NCBI RefSeq assembly: GCF_963853765.1
Contig: NC_088855.1
Location: 47,802,001-47,866,000 of the forward strand
Length of the DNA: 64,000 nucleotides
Direction of reading: 5' to 3'
Origin: Magallana gigas
Lineage: Eukaryota
The notes below the pieces were generated by a model. The model searched no databases, was not told the DNA's origin, and saw only the letters and a list, made by a program, of their open reading frames with translations. Below, in pieces: positions 35,978 to 61,337 of this stretch; the stretch's first letter is position 1; each line of letters begins with the position of its first letter. Both the position numbers and the translations under genes were made by a program.

Positions 35978-38900
35978 CTAAAAGTGTTTCAGATATTGGT
36001 CGCAATGTTTCTGGTGCGATCCCAGCGAACTCCGCCACTTGAACTTCATTCCACACGAGCACGAGTAGCGCGTAGCACTATGTTTCCCTAGTGTGTGTTC
36101 CCGTAGCGACGCCTTCCCGCGCAATTTCATCCCACAAATAGAGCACGTGTACACGGCCATGGACCGATTCTTGCATTTTAAGACATGCATTTCCAAGGAC
36201 ATCTTGTCCGAGAAAGACATCTTGCACGCGGGACAGAAGAGAGGTCCCCCAGTATGGGCTGCTGAGGATGGAGAGGGCTTTTTCTGTGAGCTGCCTAAGA
36301 ACTCGATGTCACGTGGCTTGTTCGGAGCTTTATTTACATACTGTCCCGGAAAGTTTTCACGCGATGGTTTTTCTACATTCCTGTTCAAGCCTTTTTCATT
36401 GGTGTCACCCTTAATATTCTCTGAGGAAAATATCTTGGACAGTGACGCCGACATTTGATGATACAGCTGTTGCATGTTGAGAGCGTTAAATCCGAAATTC
36501 TGATATGGTATATACTGACTCAAATTGGCCATCGAATCTCCTACAGGGAAAACCATACCATACGGATTGCCAGAAGTGTGCATAAAGGCATTGTTCTCAG
36601 TTTGTGTAGAATTTAATGAATGATGACTTTTAGAGAAATTAGTTGCTGCTGAGGAAACTGCCATAGGTTTGGATGGATCATTTGCTGTTGTCACCGGCTG
36701 TGGAGTGTGCTGGTTAATCGTCTTAGGCTCAGGTTTTAAACTGCTTGATGGACTATTCTTATTAGCTGGCCATTTCACATTGGCTCGCTGTTTCAAGCTT
36801 TCGATTATTTTTTGGGTCGCTGGCGAGTTGAGATCTGTCTTTAGGGAATTAGATAAAGGCTTATTGTTCATTTTCTGTACAGTTAAATCTGCATGCGCTC
36901 TTGGGGGCAAAGGGGAAGGTTCTTTTGTTTTGAAATGTGAGACTGTGTCAGCAGCAGAAGGTTTGGGGTACCTGACTTTTAAGTCATTCAGTATGGTATG
37001 AACACCAGGAATTTTTCCAGTGCCATTGTCATTGGAGAATTGCTTTGGTTGCAATGGCTGTTCTCTCTCTTGTTTAGCCACTATAGGTGGTGGTACTATG
37101 TTACCACTGTTTGATGCCAGACTACCACTGTGGTTCAGCCCATGTCGCTTCCTGGTGTACCTACACATGGTGGTTGGATATGGTTTGTTGATGCACGATA
37201 TTGTTCCACTACAGTTCCGTCTGTGTCCACTGAAAGAGCTCCTCCATTTGAAGGTCTTTCCACAAGTGCAAGCATACCGCCTTACACTGCTGTGCTTACC
37301 TTGAACATGTTCTCGAAGATAGGCTTCAGAAAGGAACTTCTGACCACATATCTTGCATGGTTTCACTTGTGAACTCTGTTTCAAATTGTAAATACCCTGA
37401 ATTCCATGTCTCTCATACAAATGCTGGATGAAAGAGTAAAAGTTTTTCAAAGTTATATTGCATATTCGACATACTCTGTGCTGTGTGCCTTTTGCATTAG
37501 CTAAATCAAATACAAATCTACACTGAGAGTTCTGGATATGCTGAAGGAGGTCCTGTGATGACTTGTACGAGCCCAAACAATTAGGGCACTGTGAAAACAT
37601 TTCAAAATTGTCTCCATATCTTTGCTCATAATGCCTCTGCATTTCAAGACTCTCCTCTCTGTAATCTGGTTTATTGCTGAGATTCAAAACCTTTTGTTCT
37701 TCTTTTTGACTTTCACTTTCTTCAGTCCTTAATGAATGAAGCTGATTTTCTTGTCTTACATTGCTAGACATGATAGGAGCCAACGTTTCTCCCTGCAAAC
37801 TAGAGCAATTCATGGCTACATTCATTTTTGACAAATCGACAACTGCTACCTCATCCTCCATGTAGAAGGTCTCATGTTCTGAATTTTTATCTTTTTCCTG
37901 TGAAACCATATTCTTTCCCTCTGATATATTTTGCAATTCCATAACATCTTGCAAGGAACATCGCTCTTCCTTCACTTTGGTGCTATTCTCTTCTGCATAG
38001 TTTTCAGAAATGGCCATACTTTTGATTTTAGTGTGGTCTTCTCCAGATTTGGATATTGCTGCTGCAAGATTTTCAATATTTTCCATGGTTGACATGTTAC
38101 TTTGACAATCTTTAGGATGCTCTTTTTCTTGAATATTACCTTCATTTTCCAAACTTTCCTTTTTTATTTTAAAATTCAAAGGCACAATATCATTTTTCTC
38201 AAGAATTGAAGTGTGATTACCCTTTGCAACTCTGTGATCAGTATTCTCGGATGATAAATTGTGCACATCATTAAGTTCTTGGGTCTCCTCTGAATGTGAA
38301 ATTCCTTCCTTGATAAGATTCTCACGTAGTTTTGCCTCCATGCTGTTGTCTTTTAGTAAAGCTGTTGATTCAGTATCTATTGTTTTCTTTTCCTGTTCTT
38401 TTTTATGATTTTGATGGCTTTTCAGTTTTCTTATCTTCTTTAAACTGACTGATTCTTTCTGTGTCTTGCAGACTTTTTTGTGCTGAAAATAAAGGCTTTT
38501 CCAATGGAAGTATTGTCCACAAGTACAGCCATTCCCCAAAAAATTTTTCTTGATTTCATTCTGATGCAAGTTTCTCAAGGGATTGATGTGCAACCTATGA
38601 CAATGATGATTATTGAATTTTCTCCATCTTGGTTTCAATTTTAGTAGTTTTGGAAAGCAGATATGTGTATGGAATTTTAAGGTCTTTGTGTTAAAAAACA
38701 TTTTCCCACAAACAGGACATGAGGTTTCCACAGAATGACCAATTTCTTTTCCTGGTGGTGTTTTCCTTGAAGAGATCTGGTGCTTTATTGCAAGATGAAA
38801 GTGCAACTTTAATGTAGAATGAAACTGAGAAGTACATTTGGGACATTTGAACACTTTGGTAATAATGTCAGTGGAACCTGTAGGAGAAGTTGGCAAATCC

Positions 38901-39917
38901 TCAGGTTCGTCAAATTCTATTGGTTTAATTGTCCTGCTTTCACCACATTCCTGCTTACAACCTTCCAAATCTGCAAATAAAAAAAAATACATTTGTGGCT
39001 AAAATGCAAATTGAGAACTACGGTATGTAATCTATACTGAAAATGATCTAGTGTTACTAAATTAAACATGACAAAAGTGTTCTATTGTAAACAGTCATTT
39101 AATATATATTTACATCCACTAAGTATGATTCTCTCTATTTGTTACGGAAATTGAATGTAATTCATAGCTTTATTGAGACTAAAAAGACTGAAATATACAC
39201 AATCTAGTTCTAACCAGTTTATCAATGGGTCGAAACCTTCAGCAACCTAAGGAAAATCACAGAGTGCAAGAAGTATAAATCTCAAATTCTAATGTAAGAT
39301 GACTTGGAAACGTATAGGTAAAATGACTTGGGTCTATCTCAACGAGGTTTATATATTTTTTCTGCAATGTTGCTACCTTCATATCCAGCATACATTATCA
39401 AAGAAAGCATTTTATTGTATAGATTAATGTACAAATGCAAAATTCCAATGAAAAATAAACTCAAAAAGAATTTCTGTGCAAATTTCTAAATCACACTGTC
39501 AAATGTCAACATATCATGTTGGACAGCTTCTTATCAACATCTGCAACCATTATTGTTGTACATACACAATCCTAAATATTACCTGAAAATGAAATGGTGT
39601 CTGCTTCCGTGTCCAAACCAGCCTGTATGTCTTTAGCATCTTTGTACCTTAATAAAATAACAATATTAATAAAGAAGCAATCCAATTTCAAGATCATTTT
39701 TGTGTTCAAAAGAACAAAACATATTTGATTTTTGAATTATATAATGCATGTACCTATCATGAAGATCAAGAAGGTACTCCATCACTTGACAAGCTTGTGA
39801 GAAGTTGTTTTCCAAAGAGACAGCTTCCATACGCTGGAAGATACCAGGACAGACCATGAGAGGGCACAGATCTCCTTCTTCATGTCTATGACTACTGCCT
39901 ATAAAATCCGCCATCAT
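35978..39917 (-). CDS. Multi-zinc-finger protein (~1073 aa, ~10 C2H2/C2HC fingers in three clusters), uncharacterised
   Basis: Exons (minus): 39917-39754 (ATG; exon begins 39933), 39647-39583, 38970-35978(TAG); total 3222 nt, in frame. Fingers include CPKC..HLAIKH, CPVC..HTHIC, CKICGQKF..EHVQGKH, CTCGKTFKWRSSFSGHRRNC, CSICGMKL..EHTLGKH, CSCGMKFKWRSSLGSHQKHC. Probable non-coding exon 1 ends at 40464 (AG|gtaaga). Confidence 0.9.
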
Positions 39918-41071: not shown

Positions 41072-41569
41072 GATATTATATTGACCAATTATTGGCATAT
41101 ACTGCTAGGATCCAGAAAATTTTTAAGGGGCGGGTGATTTTTCAAGAGGGCGGGGGGGGGGGGGGGGGGGTGTCTGAGAGCTATTTATTTGAATTTATTA
41201 AGGTTGTTTTTTGCATATTTGAAACCGGACGGAATTTAATAAACAAAAACAGAATCCAGTTTGAGGTGTAGAGTTATTTTGTGCGCGGCATCAAAACCCC
41301 CATAACAGTGACCACCCCCATCCTCACACGGGACGGCCGGACGGCCACGAGTGGACTCAGGACCCATGACATTGTGAGGATGGACCCTTTCATGAGGTGC
41401 GAAGGTCAGACTTCTAGAATGATAGTGTTGATTTGGTGGGATATGGGATTTCTGATATGTACACTTCAAAAATATAAAACGTCAAACTGGAAAATCATTA
41501 CTATAAAAATATAGTATAGACAATGTCAGCATATGTCTGTCCACTCTGCATGACGACCAGTTCCAAAAT

Positions 41570-43190: not shown

Positions 43191-43608
43191 CGATATATTG
43201 TAATATGTATATATTTATTCACAAACCAAGGCTCATGGGGGAATATGCATTAAAACAATAAAACAACATGATTATAACAAAAAATGGATTGAATTTATAT
43301 ATAACTATTTTACTATAAGCTACGATGGGAGGTACATATCTGCCAAGTTGTCATACACATATGCAAGGGTAAAGATTTATTTGCTAGAAGTACAGAAATA
43401 AATTGAACACGATTTTATAATACGTATTGTGTAGATTTTTATCGTTTTATTTAGCCATCAATCCACAAATCGTGATGATTTATCAATTCTTTTCTCATCG
43501 GTGTAATTTTCCCCAAACAAACCATTGTCCGTTTTTATGCGTACTTCATTATTTTCCAGAGCTTCCGGTTCAACGTGGCCTTGACCTAATAGGGAAGTCG
43601 TACACTGC

Positions 43609-43624
43609 TGGCGGTTTGTTTGAA
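43609..43624 (+). promoter_or_regulatory. CDE/CHR tandem element (DREAM/MuvB-type G2/M promoter element)
   Basis: TGGCGG-tttg-TTTGAA: a CDE, 4-nt spacer and exact CHR, ending 9 nt before the ATG at 43634; ETS-like CTTCCGG at 43562. Confidence 0.72.
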
Positions 43625-43633
43625 TCGGGCGCA

Positions 43634-46423
43634 ATGGAAACGTTAAAAAAGCTGCACCTTCCGTGGAATTTAGGGAAACGATATAATGTTATAAAGGGTA
43701 AAGAAAATTCATATTATAATACACCAAATCCCAAGATAGATGATACAATAGACGACTGTGTTCAAGAAGACATTCCTCCCAGAAGGCTTCGGCGCAACAC
43801 AAGCCTAACTCGATCGGTTCGAGACGTAGTGGGGACATTACGACAGGTTTGTCACGACAAGTGTTTACGTACTTTATTAAACATTTTTCCTTAGTAAAGT
43901 TAAACTCCCTCTAAGTTAATTGTGTGTTTAATAAAAATTCAATCTATTTTTACTCACCATGCTCAGATATTCAGATATTTAATCTGAATAGCCATCTGGC
44001 AGTAATATTTTGATTAATCAAGTTATGTTACAATCTGAATCATCTCTTGATGAATTAAAAATTCAATGAAGATAAAGCCATCATTATGCGCTGATATAGA
44101 AATCATTTTTCCCAAGGACCCCCTTTCTACACATGGTCTTAGATGTGATTCAATCACTGATTGTAGTGATTTACAATATGGATTGTTTTTAGTGTTAAAT
44201 CTGACCTATGATTCAATAAATGAATAACCCCTCTCCTCAGTAAGTGTCGTACTGTTGTAATACACGTAACAGAAATATAAAATGTATTTGTTTATAATAG
44301 ATGTAAAATGTATAAAAATGTATATTCATTTATACATTTATATTGCAATTTTTGCAATCTGAATATTTAACCTATCATATCCACAGAAAATAAAATCATC
44401 TACAAAAAGACGAATGCGATTTAATGACCATGACGAGATTACTTCACCAACCCATTCAACTATAACAAAACAAAGAAAGAGCAAAAGGAAACCAACAACA
44501 CCGAAACAGACGAAGAATTCAATTGCCTACAGAGAAGTCAAGTTGTACTCACCCTTCCAAATTGAAACACCACCAACAAAAACGCCACCTGGAATCAGAA
44601 CATCAACCCGTTCGCGGATGCAGTAAGTGTTATTATGATCATTGTTGGAAACCCATTGCCAGTTTTTTTTAGGTTTACTCATTGTCATTGATATTGACTT
44701 AAGGTCAATCTCATTGTTGAACTTTTCTCATTTTTATGAATATATTTAATTCTCACTTCACCATTGAGAAAGCAACTTCTTTTCAAAGTTGTTGGGGATG
44801 TGAAAAAACAATCATAGTATGAATTTTAAAAACCTGCTGATGCTGTTTTTAATAATGGCATTTGTAAGCATTCAGATTAACATACTGGTAGTCTTATAAA
44901 AATCAAACCTCAATTTTGATTGGATTGTTTGGACATTTAAAATAACAGGAGCTTGCAAAGGTTTGAATTTAATCAGAATTGCCATCACTGACATTAACAT
45001 CTTTCACAAATGTGTGAAGGAGCCAATCAAAATATAGCATGAATTAATACATCTTCGCTAGCCACTTTGCTCCCCATAAACCCTTGGCGGATTTCATTAC
45101 GAAAACTCGGTGATGTGGTGGATCTATCTAGCGAGCAACTTGAGTTGTGCCCCTTGCATATTTACATTGTAATCGAATTAAACAATGGGTTATATACACA
45201 CTACAGCATTAATACAACTTGAAAACATATTGATAACCGATATCGGAACATAATTAACAATGTTATTAAATATGAATAACGGTAAGTTATAACCCAGGGA
45301 AAGCATGGCATGTTTTATTCATAGTGTTTTGTAGGGACCTGTACTGGGAGTGAAAAAGTTGCCGATTTATATGAAAGCTTTCATGCCATAAAACCAGGTA
45401 TCTTTGTCGTGAATATTGTGGACCAAAGAAATTAAACAAAACACAGCTCATTGAACCCTTAAAAGCAATAACCATAAGCAGGAACGTATATACTAACGGG
45501 ATAGACAACTTTTACATTCGCCATGTTTACTTCCCATGCTATCATGCAAGCTTTGACAAGTTTGTAGAACTATGTGCATTCCCAGTAAAACATACAGGTT
45601 TTTTAAATCAATCTGGTTAGACCATCGTTGGGGAAGCACAGTACTCAAGAACTTGTGTCTCAACTTGTTAAAAGCACTGAATGTTTGACCAAAGATCACA
45701 CTTGTGTTTTCTTTTAAAGTTTATATTTACCAGCACTGCGATTGGATCTGTTACTCGCAGCTGCAGCCAATCATAAAACGGAGCTTGTCACAGAGTTTTC
45801 GTAATGAAATCCGCCAAGGGTTTATGGGGAGCAAAGTGGACCAAAAACCCTTGGCTATCGAATGAATGAATAATTATTATTCATGAAAATGAGAAAAGTT
45901 CAAGGAGTTGACTAACATCCCACAATGACTTTTGATTTAGTGATAGGATTTTCACAAGATTGATTTATACTGGTTCTTTGCATGATTTTTATTAATTCCA
46001 TGAATATTATATTACGCTTATGAGAGTGAGTTAAATCTATGAAAAAAAACAACAGCGTGGAATATTATACACATTTAAAAATTGTATAAATATTTTACAT
46101 GACTGACATTGATACTGTAGGTTTCATCAAATGGAGACGCCAACTCGTTTAAGAAGGGAAGTAGAATCCTTAACAGCTAATATGCAGGCGCTGGCAACCC
46201 TGAGTCCCAATGATCTGAAGCAAAGAACAACCAGGTATAAAACTACTTTCACAGACTGAACCGGAAAAAAATTTATTATGAAATACAGAAATGCAATCAA
46301 AGTTGATTATTTATTGTTTTCAGACAGCGAGGTAAATCTCCCTTGACCAATGGTAGTTTTCAGAGAATGGGAATTAGAACAAGTCTGAGACTACAGCACA
46401 AGATAGAAACAAATCTCTTGTAA
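43634..46423 (+). CDS. 220-aa basic, disordered, S/T-P-rich protein with KEN box; candidate PIMREG/FAM64A (RCS1)-like cell-cycle protein
   Basis: Exons 43634-43846, 44387-44622, 46121-46234, 46324-46423(TAA); GT-AG, phases 0/2/2, 663 nt. METLKKLHLPWNLGKRYNVIKGKENSYYNTP...RSVRDVVGTLRQKIKSSTKRR...TSPTHS...REVKLYSPFQIETP...MQALATLSPNDLKQ...KIETNLL. The gene model is well supported; the family assignment is only a recalled motif-level resemblance. Confidence 0.8.
45062..45839. mobile_element. 778-bp element with perfect 47-bp TIRs beginning (C)CACTTTG, in intron 2 of the 220-aa gene
   Basis: CCACTTTGCTCCCCATAAACCCTTGGCGGATTTCATTACGAAAACTC at 45062 and its exact reverse complement ending 45839; no TSD visible; no intact ORF. 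Confidence 0.85.
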
Positions 46424-58359: not shown

Positions 58360-61337
58360 ATGACAAAACAGAAAATAATAATTGACTGCGATACTGGGGT
58401 GGACGACGCTCAAGCCATCATGATGGCGCTTTCCAGACCAGACACTGACGTCATCGGTATCACGTGTGTAAACGGAAACGTGGATATTGAAAACGTCTGC
58501 AGAAACACCCTGCGTGTTCTCAAGATATGCGACGCCCTACATGTATGTTAATGGTCCGAAATATCTGACGTTTTCCTGACTTTTTTTTTAACGATTTTGA
58601 TATATTACTTGCCAGGAAATTTAACTTGCAAATATTTAAAATCGAGCCGGGAATGCCGCCTCCTGTTGAAAGCGGCGATTTTCCAGTTTTTTCGTAATGG
58701 CGCCGGTTCTGACGTTTTCCTGGTAAGTAAAATATCAAAATAGTTAACAAAAGTCAGGAAAACGTCAGATATTTCGGACTAAAGTGTGAATACAAAACTA
58801 TAAATTGTTGATATTAATGAGTTACAAAGAGAGACCTTGTACAAGGTTTTTTAGCTTTATTTGAGAGAATCAGATTTTTTTAAAGTGCGTTTTACACTGA
58901 GACTTAAGATTTTCGACCAAATTTATTCATAAGCTATCAAATTTTTCACTGACATGCTGGTAAAAAATACTTCTAGCAACGAAACAAGATTGCCTTTTGC
59001 CTGAGGATTATTCTACCAGACTGTTAAGATTTACGACTTAGAAAGAAGCAACCCTGGTTTTCAAGCACATTTTAAATAACAGATTCCTACCCAGTGAAAG
59101 TGTTCCATCTTCTCCTTTAGATTCCTGTGTTTCGAGGATGTGGAAGACCCATCATACACCATGAAGAAAATGCTTCTTTTTACCACGGCGTGGACGGCAT
59201 GGGAGACCACCCACACCCACCGGAAGTTGATTTATCTTGCATTCAAGAGGAACATGCCGTGAATGCATTGATCAGACTCACTAAAAAGTTTAACGGTAAA
59301 AATTAATGGTTTCTTTTGTAGATTTACAATATAAATACAAAAGTATGTACAGTAGCATCATTTCTTTGGCGACCAATGTTCAGAGATACTGAATATATAC
59401 TACTCAGTACCAATATAATAAACATAGCATGGACTATTTGTAAAGAAAACTGTTACTACAACAGAAATTGTCTTTTCGAATATGTTCTAATAATATGTCT
59501 TAGACTATAATTTTTTTTTTAAGACCACATATATATGATAAAATTTTAAAAATGAGTTCCAATCTTTGTACGTATATAGCCTGGGTTCGTACAAACATGT
59601 AGCATAAAACGTTCTCGAGTCACAGAACGTGCTTCACGGAATGAAAGTGTTTAGTTTACCTATGATAATTTATTTTGTTATGCAGCAATGGTTTCCTACA
59701 TTGAGAACAGTTTGGAAAAGTAATGTTTTGATAAATTTTGTTTCCTATGATAACGTTTCCTGTTTTGACATCAGGAGAGGTGAAGTTAGTGGCCATGGCT
59801 CCTTTGACAAATCTTGCCGTAGCTCTGCGCATGGACCCTGGGTTTGGGGCTCGCCTAAAGAGCTTGGTGGTCATGGGAGGAAACATGCACGGTATGTTTC
59901 TTGTTGAGGCATGCGCGTTTTGAGAAATAACTAAATACCGTTCGTAGACTTGGACGTTTCGGAACATGGCGTGTTAGTATTTTACCTGTAGTTAAGACCA
60001 AAAATACAGTTTAATTAACAAAACCTGTAGGTTTTGGGAAAATTTTGAAATAAGTTACAAATGTAAGTATAAAATTCAATTCAGGGCGATTAATTCAAAG
60101 ATCGACCATCTCATATGTCGAGTCTATTATCCTAGAATTCACACAACAAATAATTGACTTTTGTACATCGAAACTTTCGTGGGAGTTATTTTGCGGAAAT
60201 AAAAAAACCACACACTACATCATTTTTTATCGTTCATTAGGTCAAAGTGGTGCAAAGTTTTATTTATTGTAAAATTAAGAAATAGTTCCATAATATGGAC
60301 ATTTCCACATTTACATAAAAAGGAGCTTCCTTTCAGAATTTATTCTAGTCAAATTATTAAAAATTAATGTCTTCATTGAACTGAAAGTGTACAAGTGTTT
60401 CTATCGCAATATGCTAAACATCTTAATCAAAATTCCAAAACGCCTTTATGCTGAAACGATTTGGCAGATGCCATATGAGTAAAGATGCCATTATGGTAGG
60501 TACTAAATCGTATTCATTCCAAAATCATTGGAGTTTACCTATCCACTATTTTTAAGTAAGTCTGTTCTTCAATGTCATTGACGTATTTCAGGTAAGGGAA
60601 ACAGATCTGCATCCATTGCTTCGGAGTTTAACTTTGGCACCGACCCGGAATCAGCATACATTGTTTTGCATGAAGTGACATGTCCAATTGTCATAGTTTC
60701 CTGGGAGCTGTGCGTAGATTATCTGTATCCTTGGGTAAATAAAAACATTATATGAACAATAGGAATTACAGTGTATACAAATGAGTTTATTTTGTTCAGT
60801 TAGACCTTCTTATTTCAATATGATCCCATCTACACGCGAATAAAATTTTATTTTTTTATATAACAATCGTAATTTAATCGATCGTTATTCATACCCCCCC
60901 CCCCCCCCCAAAAAAAAAAAACAACCGCTACGATGAAATTACATGTGTAAATACTAGAGAAGTTTTCTTCGGAAGTACGTTATTTCAATGGAAATGTTTT
61001 ATTTCAGGAAATGGTCCATAAGTGTATTAATACAAATACACCAAAGGCAAATTTTCTTCAGTTTATAACTAAAGCATCAATAGAGGTACAGAAATCATCG
61101 GAACAGCCAGGATACCGCTCATGTGACGCCTTTGCAATGGCAGTAGCCATTGATAGTTCTATAGTGTTGGATAAAGTGGACATATATGCGTCCGTTGAAC
61201 TAAATGGGACGTTGACTCGTGGAATGCTCGTCCCTGACTGGAGGAACAAGCTGCAAAAATCACCAAATGTTACCATAGTAACGAAAACTGACACCCAGAA
61301 ATCATTGGGCCTTTGGATGAATATGGTTCATGTATAA
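58360..61337 (+). CDS. Inosine-uridine-preferring nucleoside hydrolase family protein, 315 aa
   Basis: Exons 58360-58542, 59121-59295, 59775-59891, 60592-60734, 61008-61337(TAA); 948 nt. Ca-binding motif IIDCDTGVDDA, GNV, HGVDGMGD, MAPLTNLA, MGGN, EFNFGTDPESA, CDAFAMAVAID, VELNGTLTRGMLVPDW. Confidence 0.95.
58554..58779. mobile_element. Long-TIR MITE 11 bp downstream of the donor of the hydrolase's first coding exon
   Basis: GTCCGAAATATCTGACGTTTTCCTGACTTTT ... AAAAGTCAGGAAAACGTCAGATATTTCGGAC; arms ~65 bp. Confidence 0.85.

Follow-up and report, generated by a model that had tools for sequence, protein, structure and literature searches.

A stretch of 64,000 nucleotides of the Magallana gigas genome (NCBI RefSeq assembly GCF_963853765.1, contig NC_088855.1, positions 47,802,001 to 47,866,000, forward strand; hereafter the window) carries a small gene, LOC105332100, that raises two questions. 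The first is whether its product is a regulator of mitosis, made late in the cell cycle and removed through the APC/C (anaphase-promoting complex, or cyclosome). The second is whether the gene is an invertebrate counterpart of vertebrate PIMREG (also known as FAM64A, RCS1 or CATS). A first-pass annotation of the window had proposed both. The first proposal is made probable here by a degron motif and a promoter element that are conserved among molluscs, whereas kinship with PIMREG is plausible and has to be weighed against convergence.

LOC105332100 is a genuine, expressed and spliced gene. Its four exons on the plus strand (43634-46423; Table 1) join into a 663-nt coding sequence for 220 amino acids and a stop codon, and all introns have GT..AG borders, in agreement with the 4-exon, 220-residue gene that had been predicted. 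Mapped RNA crosses the joints of introns 1 and 3, the latter in 4 stranded reads of run X22 whose orientation fits RNA of the plus strand, and all three introns are missing from a Logan transcript contig (P0003) that departs from the window protein at 3 residues. The gene had been taken for unannotated, which is not the case: it is on record as LOC105332100 (XP_019924371; UniProt K1RYB5) under the name "uncharacterized protein". A literature search returned nothing on LOC105332100.

At 43580 the RNA depth in run X1 rises from 0.37 to 37, and one contig carries a sequencing adapter immediately before this position; nucleotide conservation between Magallana and Saccostrea begins at about 43576. 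The protein XP_019924371.3 is identical to the window model over its C-terminal 220 residues and has 33 extra N-terminal residues, which come from a distal exon that one Logan contig also uses. Because the mollusc orthologues begin, in alignment, at the methionine of 43634 and the X1 contigs start near 43580, the 220-residue protein and the proximal start are taken as the conserved form. The distal exon, of which no counterpart was found in the 3 kb examined upstream of the Saccostrea gene, is taken as an alternative 5′ end of LOC105332100.

The strongest single argument that LOC105332100 would be a late cell cycle gene lies directly in front of its start codon, where a cell cycle-dependent element (CDE) is followed, after a spacer of four nucleotides, by a CHR, the homology region of cell cycle genes. 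The mammalian CDE/CHR binds the DREAM complex (dimerization partner, RB-like, E2F and MuvB), with E2F4/DP on the CDE and LIN54 on the CHR, and later the Myb-MuvB (MMB) complex and FOXM1-MuvB. In the oyster the element occupies the 10-24 nt before the ATG, which puts it at about +31 to +45 relative to the proximal RNA 5′ end. The pattern SGCGG-N4-TTYGAA has one match in the window, at this very site, where 0.02 would be expected. The comparison was extended to five further molluscs at the orthologous loci: GGCGG-N4-CHR is present on the gene strand, 24-71 nt before the ATG, in 6/6 species, and these are the sole matches in the 140 kb of DNA scanned on both strands. In dinucleotide shuffles, CDE-N4-CHR occurs at most 0.0007 times per 100 nt. 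Near-copies stand in front of the brachiopod and annelid genes as well, as GCGGTTTGTTTAAA at -20 in Lingula, a 14-mer that Saccostrea carries too, and as GCGCAACTTTCAAA at -14 in Capitella. Among mammalian CHRs, whose forms also include TTCGAA, DREAM binds most strongly to TTTGAA and TTTAAA, CHRs of the inverse form TTCAAA are functional in Ube2c and Plk4, the CDE sits 4 nt upstream of the CHR, and CHRs lie on or very near the start site (Mueller et al., 2014; PMC4176359). Judged by the aligned loci, the mollusc element is a clear phylogenetic footprint of CDE/CHR, and the CDE/CHR promoter of the first-pass annotation is upheld.

Other sequences of the 5′ region are recorded here in their own right. 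Just upstream of the CDE/CHR, TGGCCTTGACCT at 43576-43587 is conserved between Magallana and Saccostrea (approximately -63 to -52 from the ATG), and Pinctada carries the related GACCTTGACC at about -105. The proximal RNA 5′ end falls within TGGCCTTGACCT, and its reverse complement, TCAAGGCCA, resembles a half-site of the NR5A/FTZ-F1 type. Upstream of the distal exon, in the region 41080-41404, there is a palindromic CCAAT/ATTGG pair at about 41085-41098 as well as TTTGAA hexamers at 41188 and 41218; this region may be a second CHR-type promoter.

The N-terminal KENSYYN that had been read as a degron is likewise conserved. Exact KEN is kept at the same aligned position in 24 of 26 molluscs, against 1.15 expected from shuffles, and K23, E24 and N25 are at least 90% conserved in an alignment of 21 molluscs. 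In the AlphaFold model of the oyster protein these residues sit in a disordered region, with a predicted local distance difference test (pLDDT) of approximately 53-57. An N-terminal KEN is also found in Lingula, and exact KEN occurs in 13 of 23 arthropods (0.87 expected from shuffles). In the insect members (P0071, P0076-P0080, P0089, P0092, P0100 and P0127) it usually lies 10-20 residues downstream of YSPFGIETP and not at the N-terminus. Inspection of the family alignments, by eye or by regular expression, found no conserved destruction box (D-box), ABBA, RVxF, polo-box or B56 LxxIxE motif; the single RxxL of the oyster protein (RTSL, residues 206-209) belongs to a variable tail and is not conserved in the family.

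The product is strongly basic, with an isoelectric point of 11.0, 46 lysines and arginines as against 19 aspartates and glutamates, and 61 residues of serine, threonine or proline. The basic stretches resembling nuclear localization signals (NLS) that had been noted are present as STKRRMR and KQRKSKRKP. The earlier count of about nine S/T-P sites also holds, with nine found; the claim that several of these conform to the full cyclin-dependent kinase (CDK) consensus S/T-P-x-K/R does not, as T156 (TPTR) alone does so. Little or no variation is seen across the family at the S-P of YSPF, at the T-P of ETP and at the TPTR/TPTK site. AlphaFold (AF2, with the mollusc alignment) gives a mean pLDDT of 56 and disorder throughout except for helices at residues 57-82 and 157-176, of which the latter is the best predicted, with pLDDT up to 86. 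Pfam returned zero matches for the oyster exon pieces and P0003 at E values up to 10, and scans that took in three proteins of the oyster group gave no RCS1 and no other cell-cycle family there, and a profile search of the PDB gave nothing related, with a chance myosin coiled coil alone, at E above 6.

Judging by their alignments, the KEN box and the CDE/CHR are under strong purifying selection, and the predicted phosphosites are selected as well. Because both elements are real and strongly conserved, the mitotic-regulator reading of the first-pass annotation is well founded, and the oyster protein is a probable conserved APC/C substrate of the G2/M type.

These features are shared across a wide family. 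A homologue search returned 25 mollusc matches, and over the searches as a whole there is one orthologue each in oysters, pearl oyster, mussels, scallop, clams, limpets, abalone, periwinkle, land snails, a chiton and octopus. A profile built from 21 mollusc sequences and run against 1.8 billion representative proteins gave 90 matches, which include annelids (Paralvinella, Capitella, Owenia and Helobdella), the brachiopod Lingula, the bryozoan Watersipora and arthropods (an orthopteran, a hymenopteran, an odonate, beetles, a psyllid, a moth, a springtail, a millipede, an ostracod and a barnacle). The mollusc orthologues are approximately 195-255 amino acids long, and all are labelled "uncharacterized" or "hypothetical". 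When the mollusc and non-mollusc profiles were aligned with hhalign, they matched at a probability of 99.5% (E 2.9e-23) over 103 columns that span blocks 2-4, and oyster block 2 was paired with the non-mollusc block SVRxxFGxLSQKFRxSTRRRxRL. On this profile evidence LOC105332100 is a member of a previously unnamed family, without a Pfam entry, that extends over molluscs, annelids, a brachiopod, a bryozoan and arthropods.

The family has a common layout, in which an N-terminal segment is followed by block 2, a linker rich in SP and TP, block 3 and block 4. Block 2 (family consensus SVRDxxGxLRQKxRxSTRRRxRL) is a helix that passes into a basic stretch; block 3 (VKMYSPFxIETP) contains the S-P-F core that is the most conserved motif across the protostome family; and block 4 has the consensus ETPTRLRREVExLTANMQAL in molluscs and FxSPxxFxxDLxxxxxGIxxL elsewhere. 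Two side observations concern the same proteins. Annelid and chiton members (P0042, P0060, P0066, P0099, P0103 and P0031) end in a hydrophobic tripeptide (IFV, VFV, LFI or VFI) that is absent from the oyster protein and may be an unrecognised docking motif. In addition, Pfam DUF4665 (PF15679) matches four members weakly (E 0.016-0.055), which is more frequent than chance predicts for a single family; the one match that was located (P0081, residues 47-100) covers block 2, and a literature search returned nothing on DUF4665.

The explanation that we consider rather probable is that LOC105332100 encodes a disordered nuclear protein that is transcribed at G2/M, phosphorylated by CDK and removed by the APC/C via its KEN box, and that this protein is the likely protostome counterpart of PIMREG. 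The CDE/CHR at the proximal start would confine transcription to the late cell cycle (G2/M). The protein would then enter the nucleus through its basic stretches, where proline-directed kinases, presumably CDK1, would phosphorylate S/T-P sites that include those of YSPF, ETP and TPTR. The APC/C, with either Cdh1 or Cdc20, would remove it by way of the N-terminal KEN when mitosis ends or during G1. Partner binding is likely to fall to two modules, the amphipathic helix of block 4 and block 2 with its helix and basic stretch. The family would probably be the protostome counterpart of vertebrate PIMREG with the type of degron exchanged, a KEN box here and two D-boxes in mammals. Of this account, the structure, transcription and splicing of the gene, the range of the family and the conservation of its motifs and promoter element are shown here, and the timing in the cell cycle, dependence on the APC/C, phosphorylation by CDK, nuclear location and homology to PIMREG are inferred.

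The comparison with PIMREG was made through the Pfam model RCS1 (PF07326; 232 model positions, gathering score 25 bits, scanned at E up to 10) and a language-model search (Atlas), rather than by alignment to PIMREG sequences. The full-length Lingula protein (P0085) matches RCS1 positions 193-230 with its residues 170-207 (E 6.2e-4, 20.1 bits), and for its block 4 fragment RCS1 is the top Pfam match (23.7 bits, E 5.3e-5). RCS1 is also the top match for the block 4 fragment of Owenia, at the same model positions (193/194 to 226/229 for the two fragments) and E 0.1. The matching block aligns with oyster residues 155-180. Over approximately 115 Pfam scans the best chance matches reached E 0.005-0.02. 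Since chance matches bottom out there, the family had been proposed beforehand and the position is an equivalent C-terminal one, a match at 5e-5 is unlikely to be due to chance. In the Atlas search there are eight RCS1 clusters, all from Chordata. No other named family scores higher for the oyster protein (0.76) or for P0060 (0.74), while for Lingula (0.67) RCS1 takes rank 2-3, and the members searched are mutually 22-30% identical.

What is known of PIMREG itself is in keeping with such a relationship. FAM64A is scored as periodic in 4/4 data sets and has been validated as a substrate of the APC/C, and PIMREG is phosphorylated at S131 by UHMK1. The four motif pairs that had been lined up with human PIMREG, together with an N-terminal W-x-x-[LIM]-G in annelid and brachiopod members, are presumed likenesses and do not constitute a test. 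The place of human FAM64A in a list of late cell cycle genes whose CHR is conserved (PMC4176359) counts in favour of the proposed homology along with the sub-threshold RCS1 matches and the Atlas ranking. Shared ancestry of the protostome family with vertebrate PIMREG, as a distant homologue, is the reading to which the evidence leans slightly. Membership of PIMREG/RCS1 is plausible; it fails the formal Pfam threshold, and the family is best termed PIMREG-like.

Several observations weigh against this account as a whole. Lingula aside, and with Owenia matching as a fragment only, the oyster protein, its block fragments and approximately 85 other members have no RCS1 match at E up to 10, and the match is absent in 18/20 block 4 fragments and 10/10 block 2 fragments. 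The matches that exist fall below 25 bits and cover one amphipathic helix that also weakly matches the coiled-coil model Vps52_CC, and Atlas scores of 0.67-0.76 lie in a range that the tool rates as a lead only. Word-indexed searches and the exhaustive profile search returned protostome matches throughout, with neither a vertebrate PIMREG nor a deuterostome intermediate among them; a literature search returned nothing on invertebrate PIMREG. The claim that the PIMREG degron is intact in the mollusc has to be given up. Mammalian Fam64a is recognised through two D-boxes, and the non-degradable mouse mutant alters both of these and not a KEN (PMC5493652), whereas the oyster protein has a KEN box and no RxxL is conserved in molluscs. 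Most annelid members have no exact KEN and carry DEN, REN or SEN at the N-terminal position; because the insect KEN is shifted and the annelid site is mostly changed, the position of the degron is considered to have turned over within one family. Finally, an isoform that uses the distal 5′ exon would put the CDE/CHR inside an exon, and RNA depth over LOC105332100 is low in the poly-A runs sampled.

The points that concern RCS1, the degron type and the missing deuterostome intermediates are also those on which a different explanation draws, namely that this is a protostome-restricted family of disordered mitotic proteins without PIMREG ancestry, whose likeness in size, charge, S/T-P sites, degron, CHR and C-terminal helix arose by convergence, as is typical of cell-cycle proteins that depend on short motifs. 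That Atlas also returns the chordate mitotic disordered proteins CKAP2, HJURP, KNL1 and Meikin fits with convergence too. However, convergence would leave it to chance that RCS1, named beforehand, surfaces twice out of 24,736 Pfam families at identical model positions and in the equivalent C-terminal place, and at an E value well below those of the best chance matches. It would likewise leave to chance that RCS1 is the top or near-top named family in Atlas for three members so dissimilar in sequence. Independent origin is a possible but doubtful explanation.

A further alternative keeps the KEN box and inverts its role. Like Acm1, Mes1 or the KEN motifs of BubR1, the protein could act on the APC/C as a pseudosubstrate inhibitor or modulator, and be switched by CDK phosphorylation. 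A small, disordered protein with a conserved KEN and many S/T-P sites would suit such a function, and the second conserved short motif, YSPFxIETP, could be a second docking site; yet the ABBA or D-box motif that would partner the KEN is not conserved, the nearest candidate relative, PIMREG, is itself a substrate, and sequence alone cannot separate an inhibitor from a substrate; this reading is very improbable. Least tenable of all is descent from another small KEN-box cell-cycle family, such as sororin/CDCA5, securin, PCLAF or CDCA3. These proteins are known to have general features in common with the oyster protein, namely a KEN at the N-terminus, CDK sites and a chain that is basic and disordered. 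However, none of the families came up when approximately 85 members were scanned in full length against Pfam at E values up to 10, the PDB search gave its chance coiled coil alone and Atlas did not rank them.

The genomic neighbourhood bears on the history of the gene. In Lingula and Capitella the family gene stands head-to-head with GOSR1, which encodes a Golgi SNARE, at distances of 236 bp and 529 bp, respectively. In the oyster, GOSR1 lies 10 kb upstream of LOC105332100 on the minus strand, in the same divergent orientation; the coding sequence starts with an exon at 33331-33284 (MADMGNRWEG), and another exon, 91% identical, is at 33050-32952. This microsynteny supports orthology within Lophotrochozoa. 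Among the long open reading frames (ORFs) in the neighbourhood, Pfam searches identified just two, a C2H2 zinc-finger ORF and an exon of a nucleoside hydrolase (Table 1). The zinc-finger stretch has a GC content of 0.43, as against approximately 0.33 around it, and it could represent an intronless gene that was inserted recently, or one derived from a mobile element. Intron 2 of LOC105332100 contains an insertion resembling a miniature inverted-repeat transposable element (MITE), which is not part of the function of the gene. Its very high RNA depth, many variant letters and loose ends mark it as a member of a high-copy transcribed repeat family.

If the explanation that we favour is extended to its limit, PIMREG would be a regulator of mitosis that dates back to early bilaterians and did not arise in vertebrates. 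In protostomes its orthologues would have kept the CDE/CHR for more than 500 million years while the degron changed in type or place (N-terminal KEN in molluscs and Lingula, KEN after YSPF in insects, D-boxes in mammals), and the ancestral gene would have stood head-to-head with GOSR1. The case for and against this extension is evenly balanced. Were it true, unnamed genes of oysters, clams, snails, octopus, annelids, brachiopods, insects and crustaceans would gain a name and a testable function, and PIMREG, which is mainly known from work on vertebrate cancer and cardiomyocytes, would reach invertebrate models. Independent of any tie to PIMREG, the conserved CDE-N4-CHR is among the clearest sequence-level cases of a DREAM/MuvB-type promoter in Lophotrochozoa. 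Furthermore, the family offers a natural experiment in degron turnover, as KEN shifts or vanishes from phylum to phylum although the YSPF block and the helix blocks keep their place. In work on oysters, LOC105332100 would be a likely marker of proliferation. The gene was already known as an annotated, uncharacterized locus; the range of its family and the conservation of KEN and of CDE-N4-CHR are new.

Table 1. Features of LOC105332100 and its surroundings in window coordinates, with the place of CDE-N4-CHR and the form of its CHR (under remarks) in each of the six molluscs compared.
Feature	Position	Strand	Remarks
Optional distal 5′ exon	41281..41404 (approximate; start uncertain)	+	donor GT at 41405, acceptor 43559/43560
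Proximal 5′ UTR (untranslated region)	43580..43633	+	RNA contigs start at about 43580
CDE-N4-CHR GGCGGTTTGTTTGAA	43610..43624	+	CDE GGCGG 43610-43614, 4-nt spacer (TTTG), CHR TTTGAA 43619-43624
Coding exon 1	43634..43846	+	residues 1-71; start codon, KEN box, first half of helix block 2; RNA joint 43846>44387
KEN box KENSYYN	43700..43720	+	residues 23-29 (translation)
Block 2 SLTRSVRDVVGTLRQ then KIKSSTKRRMR	43802..44419	+	predicted helix 57-82 running into NLS-like basic stretch; split by intron 1
Intron 1	43847-44386	+	GT..AG; interrupts block 2
Coding exon 2	44387..44622	+	residues 72-150, last codon split; basic stretches, SPTHS, YSPF block
Block 3 REVKLYSPFQIETP	44531..44572	+	S126, P127, F128 and P133 invariant or nearly so
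MITE-like insertion in intron 2	45062..45839	.	52-nt terminal inverted repeats 45062-45113 / 45788-45839, 98% complementary
Coding exon 3	46121..46234	+	residues 150-188
Block 4 ETPTRLRREVESLTANMQALATLSPN	46134..46211	+	TPTR, full CDK consensus, then helix 157-176
Coding exon 4	46324..46423	+	residues 188-220 including SPLTNGS, then stop codon; RNA joint 46234>46324
C2H2 zinc-finger ORF	35978-38992	-	1004 aa, single exon, zf-met and zf-C2H2_4; between GOSR1 and LOC105332100
Nucleoside hydrolase exon	61011-61337	+	C-terminal part, inosine-uridine-preferring; Pfam IU_nuc_hydro E 5e-13
CDE-N4-CHR of Magallana (window)	24 nt upstream of ATG		TTTGAA
CDE-N4-CHR of Saccostrea	24 nt upstream of ATG		TTTAAA
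CDE-N4-CHR of Pinctada	49 nt upstream of ATG		TTCAAA
CDE-N4-CHR of Pecten	44 nt upstream of ATG		TTTAAA
CDE-N4-CHR of Mya	71 nt upstream of ATG		TTTGAA
CDE-N4-CHR of Patella	61 nt upstream of ATG		TTTAAA

Three known systems serve for comparison. Sororin/CDCA5, PCLAF and securin are small KEN-box substrates of the APC/C, whose degradation falls at mitotic exit or in G1. Like the oyster protein, they are disordered and basic and combine a KEN near the N-terminus with CDK sites, but no sequence or profile similarity between them and the oyster family was found, and the blocks SVRDxxGxLRQK, YSPFxIETP and ETPTRLRREVExLTANMQAL of the oyster family are not theirs.

The G2/M genes with CDE/CHR promoters, such as CCNB2, CDK1, CDC25C, PLK4 and UBE2C, are bound by DREAM and MMB-FOXM1. 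LOC105332100 shares with them a GC-rich CDE exactly 4 nt before the CHR, a location near the transcription start and conservation between species. Unlike these bound promoters, the oyster element belongs to a lophotrochozoan promoter and is known here from its sequence. The G2/M genes usually pair the element with CCAAT boxes, which the proximal promoter of the oyster does not have, whereas those of Pecten and Patella do.

PIMREG is the closest parallel. Blocks 2 and 3 of the oyster family have no detectable match to the RCS1 model, and this sets the two apart along with the type of degron. Nevertheless, both proteins are small (approximately 220-250 amino acids), basic and largely disordered, and both genes have a conserved CHR as a late cell cycle promoter element, from which the periodicity of the oyster gene is predicted. 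Ultimately, PIMREG and the oyster protein would also have in common an APC/C degron and proline-directed phosphosites, those of the oyster being predicted from its motifs.

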